A stretch of 64,000 nucleotides of DNA from Chlorokybus atmophyticus. Lineage: Eukaryota > Plantae > Mesostigma and Chlorokybus algae. A program made the position numbers and the translations under genes. Shown here piece after piece: positions 13,324-42,632 of the stretch. How positions within the stretch are numbered: the first letter of the stretch is position 1; each line of letters starts with the position of its first letter. The stretch lies in assembly GCA_009103225.1 (NCBI GenBank), contig RHPI01002699.1, forward strand, positions 224,578 through 288,577, in the 5' to 3' direction. The notes beneath the pieces are model-generated. The model made no database searches. It saw only the letters and a list, made by a program, of their open reading frames with translations, and was not told where the DNA came from.

Positions 13324-14955
13324 GTTAAGTAAGAGCTATAAGTGCTACTATCGAGAGTGATAGCAGACCTTGACTTATGCCTGTGTATGCACAACAATGC
13401 AAGCACGCGCAGCTAGTGTGTGCGGCAACTGCAATGTGTATGCGTGTGCTCCGCATCCATACACAACACAACAATCCACAAACACGCCCAGCTCACTTGT
13501 AGGCTTTGTATTGCAGAGGTTGGGGCGTTAATCAGTCCTTGCTTCGTACTCACAGTCTTGCTAAGTAACTATGGGGCTAAGTCTGCTACGTATAGTACAG
13601 CCGCATCTACTTACAACTGTGCAGTCCTAGAGCAACGGCTAGTTGTGAGATCAAGCAATAGAGCCGTTGGATCTCGATGCAGTTCGAGCTGAGCCAGAAC
13701 GGAACAGCTACGATGGTACCTGCGACGGTTACTACAATGGTACCCACGACTCACGACCGCCGTGGCAGTCGTACAACGCGCGGTCCTCATGCTAATAGCA
13801 GGCGCGGATGCCGAGCTATAGGCATGGTCGAGGAGACTTCGCGGACGTTGACGAATAGCATGACAGAATTGCGAAAAATAACAAAGCATGGTTATTCTAG
13901 TATCTAGTGTACAGCGAAATGTGATACATACAACTTGTTATCAACATAACAAAATAAGCCCAAAACTTATATAAACCAACAATCTATAGCAAAGAAGCCT
14001 ACTTAAGCATGCTATGTCGGGGTAAACTACAGCAAAATACACGCACTGTCACTCAAAACCCGATTTGAACAAAGCCTTCAACAACTCTTAAAAAAAGAAG
14101 GCATTGTTAGCTAAGTATACATAAAAGTTTTTATTACTCTATAAGCACAAACGTATTTGCGCTTATTAGATTATGCTCTTATAAACCTAGCATCTATATA
14201 ATGCAAAAAAGTAAGTATACAAATGATATAGGGCTATAGCAGAGCCAGATATAGCGCTATCACTGAATGGCACTTACAACCCTATTCAAAACATCAAAGT
14301 TTCTCATGCAGGCTGCAGCAAGCTATCGTGCTGCAGAAGGATAAGGACAACTTGCAGAGTGTGGGAGGCGCATGTAAGACTTGTATTTCATAACAAAAAC
14401 AATGACGGTTGATTATGCACATACTTGAACTCATATATGGGTGATGTACAAGGCAAAAAGGACCCCCCCCCNNNNNNNNNNNNNNNNNNNNNNNNNNNNN
14501 NNNNNNNNNNNNNNNNNNNNNNNNNNNNNNNNNNNNNNNNNNNNNNNNNNNNNNNNNNNNNNNNNNNNNNNNNNNNNNNNNNNNNNNNNNNNNNNNNNNN
14601 NNNNNNNNNNNNNNNNNNNNNNNNNNNNNNNNNNNNNNNNNNNNNNNNNNNNNNNNNNNNNNNNNNNNNNNNNNNNNNNNNNNNNNNNNNNNNNNNNNNN
14701 NNNNNNNNNNNNNNNNNNNNNNNNNNNNNNNNNNNNNNNNNNNNNNNNNNNNNNNNNNNNNNNNNNNNNNNNNNNNNNNNNNNNNNNNNNNNNNNNNNNN
14801 NNNNNNNNNNNNNNNNNNNNNNNNNNNNNNNNNNNNNNNNNNNNNNNNNNNNNNNNNNNNNNNNNNNNNNNNNNNNNNNNNNNNNNNNNNNNNNNNNNNN
14901 NNNNNNNNNNNNNNNNNNNNNNNNNNNNNNNNNNNNNNNNNNNNNNNNNNNNNNN

Positions 14956-15000
<45 letters not shown>
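14956..15000. repeat. (TG)n microsatellite bordering an N gap
   Basis: Directly visible; true length unknown because it abuts the gap. Confidence 0.95.
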
Positions 15001-15003
<3 letters not shown>

Positions 15004-16443
15004 GCGATAGCGCACACTCATTGCATTTCAACGATTACAATGAGTGCATGCCTACGTAACACAGTGGCATACGCTATGAGAGATGATGCACGGTAAAAAC
15101 CAATAGGCTAACATGCACAGCAAGATAGCAAAGCAAGACAAGCACAGATTCGGCCGGGGGGTATAGTTTTTAAGCCAACCAGCCAACTAACTCACTATAC
15201 CAAGTGCATGCGTGCATGCAAATGCGGTAGTGGGGCTGCATAGTAACAATGCATAGTATGCATAGTAACAATCAAGTATATAATGTGGAAACACATATGT
15301 TCGTGGGCTAATCATACCATAGCAACAACAGCACTGCTTTACTTGTAGAAGTAAACGCGATTGTAATACCCTTAAGGGGCTAGCCCAAATTCCATGCCGC
15401 TCCGACACAATCATATTTGAGCTTATTATAACCAACGTCACACTTCAGCGTCCCCATTCACCAGATTGCACACCGTCATAATTAGCAACTGGCAAAGAAT
15501 AAGCAGTCCGACAATGACCGATGCTACCTTTTTAACTCGCTTTCCCATCAATGGCACTTGCTTGCAACTTTTGAACACAAGTTTATTAGCGCATACATGT
15601 GCAATAGGTATAATGAATCCCTTTTGCTTGTAAGCTGTAAGCTTTTGTGCATGAGCTGCATAAAACGTACATAAGGCGTCAATAAATACCTTGCACAATG
15701 CTAGTAAATACACATGTCATCATAATGCTATGCGTGTGTGGTAGATATGATGCTCACATATAATCTGGCAAGATGCCAATGCAGAGTCTTATAGGGACAT
15801 GTGTGGCCAAGCAGACATAATTACATTATAAGATATAGTGGTCAGCATTTGTGAAGGAAAGATGTTGCTGGCTCCAAGGCGTGCGCACGCGCGTGTGGCA
15901 TCTTGCAGGCGGTGTTTAATCGAACGTCTCAAGTGTACACAAGCTGCAAGAGGGAATTCGAACACGCCAACATACATGCCCATGCATTGTAGTGCAATTG
16001 AAATTCGCTGGCAACTGATTCTGCTTGCGTGTGCCGCAATAGTCAGCTACTCTGCAAAAACCTACATTGTGTCTCTGGCCGTTTTTGCATCAAGTCGTGC
16101 TGCAAATCATTGGCCACGACATTGGCAGGCTTTGATCCAAGTACTTCACTATTGCCTCATTTCGCCAGTCAAGCATCACACAATCTAGTGCGTAGATGCT
16201 CGCACACAACGCACCTGACCAACCATGGTTGCGTCCCAGGCTGTTATGCATAATGAACTAGGCAACAAGTACGCTTTCAGTAACAGCTTCCCAAATGATC
16301 AATTCACACTATGTGCACAAAGGATCCATAACAATTGCAAGATGATCTACAGTTGTACAATACAAAAGCAACACAGCATCCACTAGATTTGCACGTCGAC
16401 AATCAGGAAATGCTGAGCCAGAGCAATACAAACGGCGCGCACT

Positions 16444-29177: not shown

Positions 29178-32100
29178 TCAGTAAAACCTGTTCTGTTGCT
29201 GCTGATACTGCCGTTGTCCTCTGCTACTAGTTGGCCCCATGTGAGGCTGCAACATTGCAAGTGCAGCTGTATGCAGCCGCCTTCGCACCCCCGTATTTCG
29301 TATGCCAATGGCGGCCAAGTCCTCCTCGTGAATAAACGGGAGGGTATCCAATGTCACCTCTTCCTGCACGGATGGAAACAAGCCATTACTTGCATTATTT
29401 CAACATGCACATGCAAGGGTTGGCACAACGGCGTTGGGGCTTTTGACTTGGATGATGTCTGGTGTTTGAACCTCTTCATGCACTCTTCAGGCATACCAGG
29501 GCAATTGCAGGCAGGGGTCAGTGCGCATGCAGGCTTGTACCTCGAGAAGCAACGCTGTGTACTGCTCAAGTCCAATGCTGCGCATGAACCCAGCCAGCCT
29601 ATCTGCGCCCTTGTGCAGCGGGTGACTGGGCGCTGAGTCGTACCGATCAGCAACTCGTTGCGCAGGTTGCCACTGTGAACCAAAGTTGTAGCCATTGAGC
29701 GTTGCTGGCATAGTCCGTGCCAGATACTGATCATCACTCCTTCCAGTACTCAACTGCAGCACACAATCACCCTTTACCAACGCTCTTTCAAAGTGAAGCG
29801 AGCAGAAGCATGACTCAATGGACATACCGGTGTCCTTGGCTGCAGAGATGACTCTTGCAAGGGTTGGTTGTGATTGCCGTTTTGCCAGCCGGGCGGCAAG
29901 TCCAAACTATGCCGCATGTGCGAGTGCAAGTGCGAGCCACGCCCTGCATTGTTAGACAAACAGCATGAACAGGAGATGGTCGCCGGCTGTTTGTCATCTG
30001 CATGCATACAAGCAGCCAGCTACATCAGCTGCTTATATGAGACTTATCAACCAGCTGCACCAACCTGATGCCAACGAGCCAAGGTGTCCAGCGTGCATTT
30101 CGTGGGGTTGAGCATTGGCAGAGTGTGCCATGGCCAACCACGGGAAAGACGTTGCGTTCTGACCGGCAACTGCCTCTGCCGCCCTTGATACTGAGACAAT
30201 GTCTTCTGAACTGGAAGAAGTTCTGAGCCTTGGGCGAACTGGCCCGCTATCAGAGAAACTACGCTGCCGCGACACCCTGGTCTTCATATTCGGAATGCCG
30301 TTAGTGTGGTGGAGTTGTGCATTGTGCGTCTCTGCATCAGGTAGTGGGTCCGCATGTGCTGCCCCCCACGCCCTTTCCTTGTCGTCTTGAGGCCTCGAAC
30401 CTGATATCTGTGCAGAACTATCCCTACCCTCGACATCCCTCGATTCACTATGCCTAGCCTCCGGTGCGCTTGCGTCGCGCACGACATTATTGTGAACTCC
30501 TAGTACATCAGCCTCACCGTTGAGCTCCTCCTGCCTGTATGGACACAAGCCACATTACGTTTTTATTATGATTGCCAAGTGAGATGAAAACCAAGCAGTG
30601 ACTTGCCACACACCTGTCATGGCTCCATGGGTTGCTGGTCAGATCTTGCAGCTGCCCCACCACATCTTGCAGGTGCAAGAAGTCGTTCTCCATAACCAGT
30701 TTGCACTGAAAAAAGGCAATCAGGAATAAATGCTGTACAACCACAACTCTACAGCAAGGTGCTCAGGGATTGCTTCTGTTGCGCACATGCAATGTGTTGT
30801 TACCTCCAAGAATGCACCCTTTGTATCGGCCAATGTCATGCGGACATCAGCGAAATCATCATTGATAATCTGCGTAGGACACTTGAGCATACGAAACCTG
30901 TGATGCCGTACAAATGCAGGGACCAGAGGTGTCATTGATTACCCTCAGCTGTGATGATGTTGGCGAGTGCAGGCCGTCAATGTCGCCATCAGCAACTGAA
31001 ACCCTCGCGCCCGCAGACAGTGCCGCAGCCTTATGCCTCGTTAGAGCTAAGGGCAGACCAGAAGAGACAAACCCCATCTGCCCGTCCGCCGTCCTGCATG
31101 ACATTGATAAGAATAAGAAAGTCAATGTTGAGGTTTCATCCGTCATCTATCATCCGTCATCTGTGTGTCCACAACACAACTGGCTGTTACAGTCATTGCA
31201 TTGACAACTCACATTGACGAGCTCCTTGGTGAACACCCGAGCGCGCTGTTGCGACGCCTTGGCGCCCGCATGGGCTCTGCATGTGTAGTCATCCAGTACG
31301 ACTGCACCGGACGTTCGAGTGAGTAAGCTGCAGTGACTGACAGCTATCACGAGCATGACTGGTGTGCAAACATGCATAAAACCCAATAACCCACAAAAGC
31401 CATATATTGAGTGCCAGACACGGTGTAATAGCCATGCTTACCTGTGCTGTTTCAGCTTGCTGCACCATCAGATGTTGTCGCGAGTGCTTGGAAGAAAGAG
31501 ACGCATCATCTGTCTGTGAAGGCACCGCCTGCAACATGCAGCGTAGCCACATTGAGCAACTTTACTCAACGGCTATAAAGCTTGAACGAGTGCGGTGAAG
31601 CACGCCATCAGCTTGCCTTGGCTGCCAACGCGGCTTCGTAATTCCCATATGCCAGGAAGTATGTTTGCTTGCGTCCAGCCTCAGATCTCTCACAAGTCCC
31701 AGTTGCAAAGAACTCGTACCTGCTCAGATGGCAACTGTGAAAACAGCTGACAGCATTGAGTACTACCAGCACTGAACAAGTTTGCATGCCCTTGCTCACT
31801 TGTCTTTCAATTGGGACTGCACGGCCTCGCTAACATGAACAGTCTGGGCGAAGCCACTACTTTGCAAGTGGCTGCAGGACAGCTTGAGTTCAGTGCGAGT
31901 TCAAAGTTCAATGTGATGTTGCAAATGGATACAATGCAGAAGCGTGTACTGTCTTACGTCGCACAGTCAATGGATGCACCAAAGAAACTGCGCCGCCGTT
32001 CTGCGCTACGTATCACGCCAGCATGTACTGGGCCGTAGTGCACGCCAATGCGAAGCTGGAAGACACGCAGTATATCAGCAACATCACAAGGAAGCAAAGC

Positions 32101-35100
32101 GGAACACACCATGAGTCTGCATGCTGCGCTCAGATGCTTTGAGGGTTCGTCAGGAGTTCACGTGCAGGCTGTGCGAGCACCTGCACGGTGGTATGCGAAA
32201 GAGGCGGGCGCACTGTGCCAATTTTGTCCAACATAGACTTTGCAACTTCCATGGCATCAGCAAGGTGGTTGGGATTTGCCTCCGGATTCAGTCCACCAAC
32301 TGCGGCGTAAGGGTCGCCATTAACCTCCATCTGCACACCAGAGTCACATATAAGCCTGATGCACCCTAAGAAAGGCAGGGTGCCTGCCGACAGGGAGCGA
32401 TGGTGCTGACCGCGACGAAGTGATGGTCTTCAATAAGGCTGTCGAAGATGTGGTACACTTCATTCAACCAGGCCACGACTTCCGCAGTGTTGGCAGAAGA
32501 GACCAACCTGGCAGCATGTCATTGTAATGTAGCTTAGCTCTGTGTAAGCTTGCCATGCCCGTCAAAATCTGTATGGACATATACCTCGAAAATCCAACAA
32601 TGCCAACAACGATAACCGTAACATCCTTGTGAAAACTCGCCGTCACTGGGGTCCTCCGATTGGTAGGCTGCTCCTGCACTGCTGAGCGGCGCATGACCTA
32701 CAGTGTGCGCAAGCCACACTTAGTGGCAGGCCAGTAAGCAAAGGTCCAACCTTTGTGCATAACCATTTATGAAACTGGATGGTGAAACGAGACTTTTTGT
32801 TGCAAACCTCTTGAAGTTGACGAGCAGCAAGCCTGCCAACCAGTACCTCTCTGCCCTGTAGCTTCTTGCGGCGCAGTGTTGCTTGTAACCGGGCCACAAC
32901 CTCTTTTTTGTTGACAGGCTGGCACAAGACTTCATCAGCTCCGGCCTCCATGCCTCGTATGATGTCGTTATACTGCAGCAACGCAGAGTCAGATCTGACC
33001 ATTTTGACGAACAACATGTGCGACTCGTGCAGTGGCTACCTTGCCGGCTGGGGTGATCATGAACACCGGCATCAGTGTGGCACGGAACATCTGCCTCAAT
33101 ACCTCGCAACACTTTAAAAAACAACATTGTGAGGGAGTTTCATACGCGCACAATTGGTCATGGCTACTGCCACTTCAGTGGCTTGCAGCTGTGGTATGCA
33201 CACTGACCTCGAAGCTGTCCTGCAAGGTGGAGTCCAGCACTGTTATGTCTGGAGCAGGCGTACTCTCCTTAAGTACAGTGAATGCTTGCTGCAGGTCTGA
33301 TGCATTCAACATCTGCAGTGCACGCCAACAGAGTGAGTAATACAGGGAGACCACACGCAGGGAGGGAGAAGCCCCCAACTTGCCTGATAGTTGGTTGGGA
33401 GCAGAGCGTGGAATGAAGCTTCAAGAACTGCGTCGTTCGTAACCAGTAGAATCTGCACTTGCTGCTGATCTTCATCCATTGCAGCAAGCACCGCCAGCAG
33501 ACTTTTGTCCTTGTCCCCGACATCGGTCGCTTCCTGCATACCAGGCAAGGTTGTTGTAAATGCTCGAGGCAAGGGAGTTGCATGGTTGTGCGCATGTACT
33601 GTAGTTGCTGTTGGGCACGTTTGCAAATGGCTGACCTGGAAAGAGGCGCGCTTTATGAGCGAAGCATGAAGATCGGAAGTAGTTTTTCCACCCACAAGCT
33701 GCTCGACTGATAGACAGTTGGTTGGCGTTCCAGAGCGGCGCGACTGCAAGCCTTGCGCTGACATGGACCTTTGTACCGCAACTTGACTCGACAGGCTTGT
33801 CTGGGACCAACATCATGTTGGTGTTTGTTGACAACTGCTGCTGGCTATAGCTACCACGCATTCGATGCCCGTGTGCATCAGGGGTGCTCTCACCTCGTCT
33901 ATAGAGGCCACCGGCAGCGTCAATGAAAAAGTCGTTCCCTCCCCAATTTTGGACTCGACGGAAATCGCGCCGCCATGAGCAAGCACCAGTTGCTCAACTA
34001 AGTTCAAGCTGCCATCAACACAAATATTGCATAAACATGCAAAGGTAAAGTACACCACATGGACAGCCCAGCACGTTTAAACCCTTTTGTGTCACAAACT
34101 ATGTGCCAAGTACATACCCGAGACCGATACCGCCATAGTTTCGAGTTACGCTCATGTCCACCTGCACACATCCCACAGCTGCATCAAATAACCTGTACGC
34201 AACTGAAGTATCATTGACGTGGTATAGAGCGTCATATGGAGCCACAGACCTGCTTAAAAGCCTCAAAAACTGTTGTGATGTTCTCATCAGGGATGCCAAT
34301 ACCAGTGTCGGAAACTCTGTGAGCACAAGGTACAAGGGACTCATGGGTTACTGCAAGCAAGCTGGCAGAGATACGGCTCAAAAGAGGTGCTCACTGTGTT
34401 TGTACCGGAAGGAGACGAAGTTTGCATCAGCGGCCAGTTCGGCGGCGACAGTGATTTGTCCCCGATCAGTGAACTTTGCGGAGTTGCTGAGCAGATTGTA
34501 GAAAATCTGCACAATGCGCCCTGCGTCACCCCTGACGGGAGGCAAGTTGTCGGGGAAGTTGATGACCAATGTGACTTCCGGCTTTAACAGCGGCCGTGTC
34601 AGATTGCGAATGTCTTCAAACACAGCTGTCAACCGGACTTCCTCCTGCTGGACAACAGTGAGCATGCAAGACACCTGCCAATGTCATGCACAGATACAGA
34701 GTGTTGTCTTTGTTGACCTGCTTCAGGTCAAGACAATGGTCACGCAGTGATGCCGTGTCCAGGATGTCATTCACCAGAGTCTGTAGCCTGGCACCGCTCA
34801 AACGGATGGTAGAGACGGCTTTCTGCAAATGGTGGTTGATCACCCCGCAAGTGCCATCAAGGATTGAGTCGGACAGGCCGATAATACCATGCAGCGGCGT
34901 GCGCAGCTCGTGTGACATCTGGCATTGTAGATAGGTCACCAAGTCAGCGATTGCACCAGGTCATGGCAACATGTGAGAGGAGTGACCAGAGCTGAGCGCA
35001 AGCTCATACCGAAGCAAGGAACCGATCCTTTTGTGTCAGGGCATGCTTCAGCTCCGATATGGCCTTCATGCGTGTGGCACCCTCCAAACCAAGAAGAGCC

Positions 35101-37985
35101 TTCATCTTGGTAGTCTCCAAGGTTAAGATGTTGCCCTGTTCACGCGTGGAGCACACTTTACTAACATGTTGACAATACTGCCCCGCAACGAGCATGGCAT
35201 TGTGCGTACCTGCAAAAGGAATGTAGCAAACACCACTTTGGCAAAGAAGTCACAGCAAATGTACACAGTCTCCTCCACCCTTACACTGTACATCTGCGCG
35301 AAGTACACAGGTTGTGAGTGGGCATGTGTAAAGTGGCAGCATGCGTTTGCCCTGCAAGAGAGTTCTTACGTTCAATGCAGCCAGCACCCAATTGATACCA
35401 AACAAACACCAAAGAGTCAGAGTAAACACGCGAAAAATGCGCCTGGTTCCGAAGTTGGACTGCGCATGCAATCCATGGTCATCGAGAATGAACAAAGCGT
35501 TCAAGCGCAGTCTGTACGGATGCACACCGTAGCGCACCTCTGCATCGCTAACTTCAAACAACTTATAAAGCTTCTTCAACACGACTGCAAAGGCCGCCAT
35601 GCTGATCGCCAAGAACACCATGTTGAACGGCAGCGGAAGGTACGATGCCAAGAAGCCGGAGATGACCATAACCTCATCACAAAGCAATGCAACCCAGACC
35701 TGCATGGCAACATGAGTTCTCTCTTAACTGTTGCACAAAGCTGCTGTGGTGCATTACATATCATGCAAACAGCCGCCTTCAACACCTGGTGACCAAGCCA
35801 AAGTGGTTAAGCATTGGTGTTCACCTTGCGTTCAGGGTACTTGGCAATCCTTCCAGCCAAAAACAGCAGGCAGGGTGTCGTGTGCATCCACTGCAGATAT
35901 CGCACGGCAACCAAAGGCCTGCCAGTAAAGTCTAACAACACGGGAACTACACCTGCGCAGACAAGTTTTCAAAAAGTTGGCTACCTGGCAGCCTTTACCA
36001 CCACGCATAACAAGCCGCATCTTTGAGAAGGATGCAACGGGCAGGAAGTACCAGGAACTAGCATGCAGATGTTTGTCATCATGGCCATTGAGACAGCTGC
36101 AAGGATAATAACCTCCTGCGATGAACAAAAACAGAAATGGAAAGGTTTTGAGTATGTTTTGCGCACTGGTTTTAGGCGCTGCTTTTCCAGTACAACTATG
36201 AAGCAAGCTTTGTGGTGGAGGAACTGCTCTGCCACAGCACTTACTAAGCTGCGCTTCTTTTCGTCACGCTCAAGCAGCAACTGGCACAGAGATACCACAA
36301 CGCTGGAGGTGAATGTCGCTACCGCAATCTGTAGAAAGGGAACGCAAATGTAAAATTAACTATGGGTTGAGAACAACATAATTGCACAAGAACACGTAAA
36401 CACAAGTAGCTTGCGGCTTTTTTGCTATAGTCGTGCGTTCTGAGCTTGCAACTGAGTGCATGACGTTGCTACTTTGCCACTGTGTGTTGCGCAGCAAAAG
36501 CCAGTGGCACTGGCTAAACAGCTAGGACACATGAATGTAGGGACCATGAAGGTTTGGAAAGCAGTGGTATCAGCAGGCAGATGTCAACTCATGTCAAGTT
36601 ATGTATGTCCACCGAGTGTAAAAAGAGGGCAACCAATGGTGATCCATGCGTCAATCGCAACAGTATGGGCAACGTTACCAAGTACGTGTCAGTGCCCCAG
36701 GGGTGCAGTTGCGCCAGTGCTTCAGGTGACGTGGGGAAAGTCCAACGCAGCAAACCCACCCAAAACCCAAATGAAGCGCACATCAGCACAATTAGCTTGA
36801 GGGGTTCTCGTATGGGCGCCCCGTATCCAACTTGCAGGCTGACGAAGGACTTGCTTGTGAGCAGTGCAGCAGGGTCTGTGGAAAGCAGGTTATAAAAAAG
36901 AACGCGCGCATACACAGCAAAACTGCGGTGCTCCAGCAAACCCAACCAACCACACCACAGCAGTGCGAAAGGTACCGAAAGTAGTGTTGGTCAGCAAAGC
37001 TGTACAGCAATGCTTGCAACGCACTCACACCACAGTTGACTCTACTGGCACGCTGTATGTCGATCACAAGCATCCCAAAGCTGTAAGTGATGTACACCAG
37101 CACTCGGCTGGTCAATTTGAGGTCTTGTGCGCAGACTGCCTTCTCAACAAGCTTACATCACAGTATGCTTGCTTGCTACACTGACTACTGCAGCTTGCTG
37201 CTGCTTGCGCATGGCTGCATTGCGTGTGGTATGGAGTATAATGACCACAATCTACTTCTACATGTTACTTAGCTGCTTGCGCACAGACAGCCTTCTCAAC
37301 AAGCTGGAACCAATGTGTGCGCTGTTGGTTACCCAATTACAGCGCGCTGCAGCTTGTGCATAATTGCATTCGCTTGTGACATAAACCCTATTGACTGCAA
37401 GCTGCTTTCAAGAACTACTCTGCTGCGCGCGCGCAGCTGAGTGACTACACCTGTAGGAACACCACTTCTACCAAGCTTATACCTAGAGCTTCACCATTTT
37501 ACTCACTGGTTGGCATTGTGAACTCAGTTCCGCAACCGTGTGGCGCAGCACTTGCTTTCAGTAGCCAGCATGAACAAACTAGCTGGTGAATTTGCTTACA
37601 CTCTGGGGCAATGCGGAAATAGCAGTGCTAACCAGGCTTACAATTCAAGTGATCTCTCTTTATTCTCACAGCCGCCCAAAAGTAGCAGCTGATTGTACTC
37701 GCGATAGCCACACATCTGCCCTACAAGTGCAAAGGATGAGTTACCTGCTGACAAGAGCGTTTGTAGCTCCGCTGACATGGAGGGGCTCCTTGGCCCTGTC
37801 GCCATCCCTGACCCTGAAGTGCTCCTGCTGGAGACCAAGCTGATGGCCTCCGGCGTCTTGTGGTGCTTGAAGGGGCCGGCGGCGGCCGCCGCCACCGCCT
37901 TGACCGCCTTCTGCAGGCTAGCCATGCCCGCAAACATCCCACCACTATCGCCCGCGAGCTTGCCTGCTGCTTCCTCCATACCCAT
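29178..37985 (-). CDS. Histidine-kinase rhodopsin (HKR/COP5-12-like): rhodopsin, HisKA, HATPase_c, receiver, cyclase-homology domain, long linker, SAM; more than 20 exons
   Basis: Rhodopsin helix C RYLQWMHTTP and helix G CDFFAKVVF (retinal Lys). H box SHELRTPLHGIIG, N box QIFYNLLSNSAKFT, G1 VSDTGIGI, G2 YGGIGLG. Receiver PDITVLD...GADEVLCQP. Cyclase VTVIVVGIVGFS...EVNGDPY...RIGVHYGPV. SAM FMRSIGLEQY...EEVTLDTL...EDLAAIGI...GVRRRL. Confidence 0.93.
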
Positions 37986-41610: not shown

Positions 41611-42558
41611 GCAACACGATGAATGCTATCAACCTCGCCGCCCTTTCCGCCGCGTTAGCTATGGCGAGCGTCTTGCATGTGTCTAAGTTAAAACGACTTC
41701 AATCGCAATGTTAAAGTTAAAAGGAGCCATTTTCCTCCTCGTTTAAGGTCGCCCCAAGCCTATCATTACCATCATTGGGCTCATAAGAATGTTGGTATTA
41801 ATGTCCAGGTGTTGCTTGCCGCGCTTGTGTAAATGAATTAAGCTTTTTGTGAGAGAGGGCGTTTCTCCTCATAGTGCACTCGGCAGTGATGTTACCTGAT
41901 AGACCAATGAAATGGGCATGACACTTGGCTAGCTTTGCCTTTGGCTGAAGTGCTTGAGTAAATACAACATGTAGGGCTTGCGTTGCGTGTTGCATACTTC
42001 AAGCATAGTAAAGGGTCTTTCAGAACGAAAGATGCAAATTGAATTGTAAGTAGCATGCATCTGCACAGACGCTTCACGCAAACTTTGTGCATAACTTTGT
42101 ACTGCGAATGGCATTTGCGCATGCTTGCAGAGTGTGGTTACTGTAAATGAGTGACACTTATCAATATGTTAAGCGTCTTTCAGGGTGCCAGTTGCACTCT
42201 CTTGGTGCATTCAACAATCTCTACTGCAAGTTGGTTTATACCCTGTTCACGTCTAGGCCTATGGGGTTGCCACAAGGAACGAATCCGTAAGCCTTTTAAC
42301 CCATGACTGGCACAGACCACCAGAATTGTCGCTTGCACGCCCACATTTCTGGTGGGTGGTGGAGAGGCGTTGCAGAGAATTCAAAAGATTCCCTCCACTG
42401 CGCCAGTGACGTCTCTCATGATGAAAATTGGCAATGCGCAATTTAAAACAAGGCACGGCACGGCTTTAAACAGACAGAGAGGCAGCGCCACAGGAATCCG
42501 TGACGGGAGTGGAGCAGGAGCACAAGGCGCCGGCGGCGGCGGAGCAGGAGCAGGAGCA

Positions 42559-42590
42559 GGAGGAGGAGGAGGAGGAGGAGGAGGAGGAGG
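42559..42590 (+). repeat. (GGA)n trinucleotide run upstream of the ABCG start
   Basis: About 10 GGA units preceded by GGAGCA units. Confidence 0.9.
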
Positions 42591-42632
42591 GGCAGGGTTG
42601 CTGTTCACAGAGACGGGCCTGCGGACGACACG

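Follow-up and report, generated by a model that had tools for sequence, protein, structure and literature searches.

A histidine-kinase rhodopsin gene of Chlorokybus atmophyticus with an apparently inactive cyclase domain

The locus described here lies on the minus strand of a 64,000-nucleotide stretch of Chlorokybus atmophyticus DNA (contig RHPI01002699.1 of assembly GCA_009103225.1, positions 224,578 to 288,577), which we call the window. It encodes a histidine-kinase rhodopsin (HKR), and it raises the question of whether such a gene can be kept open and spliceable while its cyclase homology domain no longer carries the residues needed for catalysis. Our analysis supports the reading that the domain is catalytically dead and is kept inside an HKR of intact frame. 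Of the features that define an HKR, a rhodopsin with its Lys, the kinase domains HisKA and HATPase_c, and a C-terminal class III cyclase homology domain are there. A first-pass annotation of the same DNA had proposed a pseudo-cyclase acting as scaffold or as the regulatory half of a heterodimer, and its claims are taken up below where our results bear on them.

Residues of the cyclase homology domain

The domain is encoded by six exons, given here in coding order with positions in the window.

31617-32697, minus strand: class III cyclase homology domain, exons C1-C6, identified by PF00211, alignment to solved cyclases, frame and codon score
32697-32585, minus strand: cyclase exon C1, AG acceptor, GT donor, in frame
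32507-32411, minus strand: cyclase exon C2, AG acceptor, GT donor, in frame
32330-32181, minus strand: cyclase exon C3, AG acceptor, GT donor, in frame
32055-31958, minus strand: cyclase exon C4, AG acceptor, GT donor, in frame
31871-31800, minus strand: cyclase exon C5, AG acceptor, GT donor, in frame
31719-31617, minus strand: cyclase exon C6, in frame with C5

Pfam profile searches were done on single exons. The matches to PF00211 are colinear (C2 at profile positions 24-50, C3 at 56-93, C4 at 102-133), each single-exon score being below the gathering score. A codon table built from the non-cyclase exons of the gene gives each of the six its highest score in the model frame. Exon C4 is alignable to the Chlamydomonas soluble guanylyl cyclase beta subunit (3ET6) and to the C2 domain of the adenylyl cyclase AC2 (1AZS). 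Exons C1, C3 and C5, like the first and second receiver exons, had no phmmer match in the PDB at E 10, so positions in them were aligned by eye to Figures S4 and S6 of PMC6284317.

Exon C1 ends in the reading ..VTVIVVGIVGFS, in which the first metal-binding Asp is replaced by Gly (codon GGC, 32604-32602). This Gly stands opposite the Asp of ILFSDIVGFT in Cr2c-Cyclop1 (Figure S4 of PMC6284317), and no acidic residue lies close by to stand in for it. The start of exon C3 reads MEVNGDPY against VETIGDAY, so that the specificity Glu (32327-32325) and the second metal Asp (32315-32313) are retained. In exon C4, compared with 3ET6 and 1AZS, the phosphate-binding Arg is retained, the specificity Cys is Ser (31989-31987) and the ribose-orienting Asn is Asp (31968-31966). 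Exon C5 begins T-H-L-Q-S-S-G against S-R-M-E-S-T-G, which places His (31870-31868) at the transition-state Arg; it sits four residues past the Asn position, the spacing usual in the family. Every one of these residue calls had been made in the first-pass annotation and was reproduced here from the DNA, the Ser and Asp in place of Cys and Asn being found in the alignment to the solved structures as well. Besides these key residues the domain departs from active guanylyl cyclases at many otherwise invariant positions.

A competent class III cyclase has two metal Asp and an Asn and Arg pair; here one of the former is Gly and both of the latter are exchanged. The guanine-recognition pair has its Glu, with Ser in place of Cys. 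Both metal Asp are needed in every characterised class III cyclase, as is known from the mammalian adenylyl cyclases and the soluble guanylyl cyclases. The exons as read could still mislead if alternative exons restored Asp, Asn and Arg, an outcome the first-pass annotation had named as fatal to its proposal. A motif scan of all six frames of the window gave no other exon of the DIxGF or NxxxR type, and the sole variant with G in the former motif is C1 itself.

Gene model, kinase, receiver and tail

The HKR gene is modelled as 32 exons, all in frame, at 29178-37985 on the minus strand. They encode a protein of ~1611 aa in ~4.8 kb of coding sequence with no stop or frameshift. The remaining parts of the model are as follows.

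37745-37985, minus strand: exon N1, cytosolic N-terminus with the proposed start (inferred ATG at 37985-37983, in-frame stop upstream), ending in phase 1 with a GT donor
36679-36875, minus strand: exon N2, hydrophobic stretch and candidate additional transmembrane helix (TM0), with in-frame joins to N1 and X1
35210-36328, minus strand: rhodopsin exons X1-X5, PF01036 colinear in three exons, junctions in frame
33894-35135, minus strand: histidine kinase exons X6-X11, with HisKA (PF00512) and HATPase_c (PF02518)
32808-33800, minus strand: linker and divergent receiver, exons X12-X15, with X15 aligned to solved receivers
31529-31616, minus strand: proposed 88-nt GC-AG intron with donor AAG/GCAAGC, inferred, enclosing a TGA at 31610-31608
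29828-31528, minus strand: proposed low-complexity linker exons D1-D7 (~350 aa), with in-frame AG/GT junctions and introns of 67-140 nt
29178-29753, minus strand: proposed SAM exons D8-D9, stop TGA at 29180-29178, identified by SAM_2 (PF07647) on D9 and by frame

Junctions were checked one by one for phase and splice signals; a splice path from a dynamic programme was set aside because it over-split the exons. From the first transmembrane helix to the end of the cyclase domain, a stop-free core of 21 exons (X1-X15 and C1-C6) runs from 36328 down to 31617. All acceptors in this core are AG and its introns measure 67-129 nt. Internal donors are GT with one exception, the GC donor CAG|GCAAGT at 33383-33382 that ends exon X12, which was accepted since only with it is the frame of that exon kept. 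Towards the 5′ end, the N2-X1 intron is 350 nt and the N1-N2 intron (36876-37744) is 869 nt, the latter long against the 67-177 nt of most introns of the model. Upstream of the gene, at ~42450-42610 on the minus strand, there is a trinucleotide repeat that reads as poly-Pro, poly-Leu or poly-Ser according to frame. Elsewhere in the window, 14001-16000 is an AT-rich island with a G+C content of 0.32, against ~0.5 for the rest.

Judged by their residues, both rhodopsin and histidine kinase seem to be in working order, and the kinase looks canonical. PF01036 matches three rhodopsin exons in colinear order (profile positions 61-90, 105-156 and 194-218), the Schiff-base Lys lies in DFFAK (codon 35239-35237), and helix 3 reads RYLQWMHTTP. 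The hydrophobic stretch of exon N2 was likened to TM0 by comparison with Figure S3 of PMC6284317. HisKA is matched with E 6.7e-14, and HATPase_c is colinear over three exons (1-33, 42-63 and 78-110). The H-box is SHELRTPL with its His at codon 34912-34910, and the N, G1, F and G2 boxes are all there.

The receiver that follows is less well preserved. No single exon matches PF00072, while an alignment of exon X15 with solved receivers, PleD and PhoB among them, has E 5.7e-06. In that alignment LCQPV faces LTKPI, from which the conserved receiver Lys is read as Gln (codon 32921-32919). The acceptor Asp (codon 33234-33232) and the Thr are retained. The acidic pair reads Thr-Asn at ~33440-33450 when placed by eye with the landmark spacing of CheY-like receivers (44, 28 and 22 residues), so that the full catalytic quintet is not present. 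On these residues the domain may be a pseudo-receiver despite its acceptor Asp. The best-scoring stretch for X15 is the pseudo-receiver D2 of PleD, which likewise lacks the conserved Lys (it has Arg there); unlike such pseudo-receivers, the Chlorokybus domain still has the acceptor Asp and the Thr. The claim of a gene otherwise intact outside the cyclase domain thus stands for the 32 in-frame exons and the canonical kinase, and fails for the receiver, which is degraded too.

The TGA at 31610-31608 had been taken by the first-pass annotation as the end of the gene. Seven bases ahead of this apparent stop lies a GC donor, AAG|GCAAGC; its use at 31616 gives an intron of 88 nt, a length typical of the gene, with the next exon in phase 0. 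The frame then stays open through nine further exons (D1-D9), which have AG acceptors and GT donors and are separated by introns of 67-177 nt. Exon D9 covers positions 30-65 of the SAM_2 profile with E 1.3e-3, slightly short of the gathering score, and D8, the exon ahead of it, terminates in a typical first half of a SAM domain. Since a donor like that of X12 opens an in-frame chain leading to SAM, the TGA is probably intronic, and we consider it quite likely that the gene continues past 31610 to a SAM tail, as modelled.

Likeness to Cop5 and competing readings

Two groups of algal HKRs are the natural comparison. Cr2c-Cyclop1 (Cop6) and Vc2c-Cyclop1 are light-inhibited, ATP-dependent guanylyl cyclases; phosphorylation of the receiver Asp by the kinase of Cr2c-Cyclop1 turns the cyclase on, and light inhibits this (PMC6284317). 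They share with the Chlorokybus gene the domain order and the RY(V/L)QW of helix 3, and the H-box of Cr2c-Cyclop1 is identical, with a very similar G-box and acceptor-Asp context. In contrast to the Chlorokybus gene, the 2c-Cyclops retain every catalytic cyclase residue. The linker between kinase and receiver is ~500 aa in Cr2c-Cyclop1 (1607 aa in total) against ~100 aa here, and the Gln at the receiver Lys is another difference from that protein.

The second group is Cop5/HKR1 of Chlamydomonas with Vop5 of Volvox, which have the same order of rhodopsin, kinase, receiver, cyclase-like domain and SAM (the SAM being modelled in our case). The cyclase domain of Cop5/HKR1 is likewise without the first metal Asp, the ribose residue and the transition-state residue, and it shares the Gln in place of the Glu of RMES in active guanylyl cyclases. 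Its size is close as well (1501 aa against the ~1611 aa modelled). Cop5 is the more degraded of the two, with the phosphate Arg also gone and Phe at the Cys position where Chlorokybus has Ser. Helix 3 differs, being RTVMW in Cop5 and RYLQW in Chlorokybus, the latter closer to the RYVQW of Cop6. Cop5 belongs to a chlorophyte and the present gene to a streptophyte, and the likeness described here is one of architecture and residue pattern.

That such a cyclase is inactive or needs a partner is not a new idea, having been voiced for Cop5 or Vop5 in three papers (PMC6284317, PMC8006352, PMC7693036). Tian et al. 2018 found Cop5 to be without guanylyl or adenylyl cyclase activity and nearly all of its key cyclase residues to be missing, and considered that it might dimerise with a partner not yet known; Tian et al. 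2021 restates this. In Awasthi et al. 2020 the cyclases of Cop5 and Vop5 are called inactive, with possible complementation by an active partner, and SAM domains are given for Cop5-8 and for the Klebsormidium HKRs. A 2024 paper gives Cop5 a phenotype in ciliary steering and a C-terminal SAM domain. The Chlorokybus gene matches this published situation. What is new is that a basal streptophyte has such a gene too, one that is less degraded than Cop5 and has a degraded receiver as well.

The reading we prefer, and hold to be somewhat probable, is that the gene encodes a Cop5/HKR1-type HKR with a working kinase and a receiver-cyclase branch stripped of its catalytic hallmarks. Several points weigh against it. 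Every splice junction is modelled from the DNA sequence, and the assignments of TM0 and of the receiver acidic pair are by-eye alignments. Asn to Asp and Arg to His are small chemical steps, and an active site might accept Ser in place of Cys. The receiver, which still has its acceptor Asp and Thr, may be phosphorylated. Searches with rhodopsin exon X4 and linker exon D6 gave neither an orthologue nor an annotated protein, the word search with D6 yielding no homologues.

Four other readings were weighed. The first, proposed by the first-pass annotation, makes the domain a regulatory or complementing half of a heterodimer, with a joint light-tuned active site formed together with an active paralogue, as in the alpha and beta subunits of soluble guanylyl cyclase. 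Class III cyclases are dimeric and share their sites between subunits, the Chlorokybus domain has kept Glu, second Asp and phosphate Arg, and the same was already suggested for Cop5. The likeness to soluble guanylyl cyclase and to the C1 and C2 domains of mammalian adenylyl cyclase is that of a cyclase-fold subunit with a partial catalytic set that works through dimerisation. In class III heterodimers, however, both Asp come from one partner, while Asn, Arg and the specificity pair come from the other, so that each partner brings one complete half-set. With Gly at the first Asp, and Asp and His at Asn and Arg, both half-sets are incomplete in Chlorokybus and both composite sites would be impaired. 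A partner could therefore not be complemented, and at most would be titrated or inhibited. This weakens the proposal, which we now think unlikely.

We give a lower probability still to the view that the gene is decaying after duplication, as a young unitary pseudogene derived from an active HKR. Two consecutive modules without catalytic residues would fit such decay. So would the result of a search with exon X4 (110 aa, transmembrane helices 4-6), which gave no protein containing the exon among ~15 billion proteins (1.84 billion representatives). The sole match was P0001, a stand-alone HKR-type rhodopsin of 427 aa with 42% identity over 62 aa, which is uninformative on the cyclase domain. P0001 is found on two short Logan transcript contigs (L001:234-1517 from SRR11178183 and L002:226-1509 from SRR11178171), and its helix 3 reads RYLQWAFTTP. 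Against decay stand the absence of any stop or frameshift from the 32 exons (~4.8 kb of coding sequence), all of whose splice sites are usable, the canonical kinase motifs, and the codon scores of the cyclase exons, which are best in the model frame. As a rough inference, neutral divergence so deep should have brought many stops, and the long open and spliceable frame therefore argues against neutral decay.

A cyclase that is non-canonical yet active, using the remaining metal Asp together with the Asp and His that replace Asn and Arg, is a reading to which we give little credence. The retained Glu, second Asp and phosphate Arg, and the conservative nature of the exchanges to Asp, His and Ser, speak for it. 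The established need for both metal Asp speaks against it, as do the absence of an acidic residue near the first position and the finding that Cop5, with a comparable pattern, showed neither guanylyl nor adenylyl cyclase activity. A gene-model artefact or assembly error that hides canonical residues is hardly credible, for although the junctions are all inferred and each key change is one base from the canonical codon, four independent positions differ together with many conserved neighbours, no frame of the window holds a canonical motif, and the exon phases fit only the given model.

One candidate identity for the gene was also considered. In a published survey (PMC10865886) the one HKR given for Chlorokybus is ChlatRh, which carries the nuclear-targeting motif GKRKL. 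This motif is missing from all six frames of the window, so the gene is probably not the published ChlatRh.

Proposed function and meaning

If the Cop5/HKR1-type reading is right, each active site of a homodimer would have Asn, Arg and one metal-binding Asp replaced, and no cGMP or cAMP would be expected. The half made up of receiver, cyclase-like domain and SAM tail, which has stayed in frame, would most likely be a dimerising and docking module. The light signal would then leave through the kinase, by phosphotransfer in trans. Alternatively, output would come from hetero-oligomers with catalytically competent relatives, which the Chlorokybus subunit could at most attenuate. A broader and doubtful proposal is that SAM-tailed HKRs with non-catalytic receiver and cyclase domains form an old and conserved class common to streptophyte and chlorophyte algae, acting as trans-signalling light-gated kinases in which the dead half is a docking scaffold.

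For optogenetics, the gene as it stands would be no tool for cGMP. The finding takes the HKR type with a dead cyclase, as known from Cop5, beyond the chlorophytes to an alga that branches among the earliest streptophytes. If orthology with Cop5 should hold, the non-catalytic half would predate the divergence of the two green lineages and have persisted ever since, which would point to a real non-enzymatic role.

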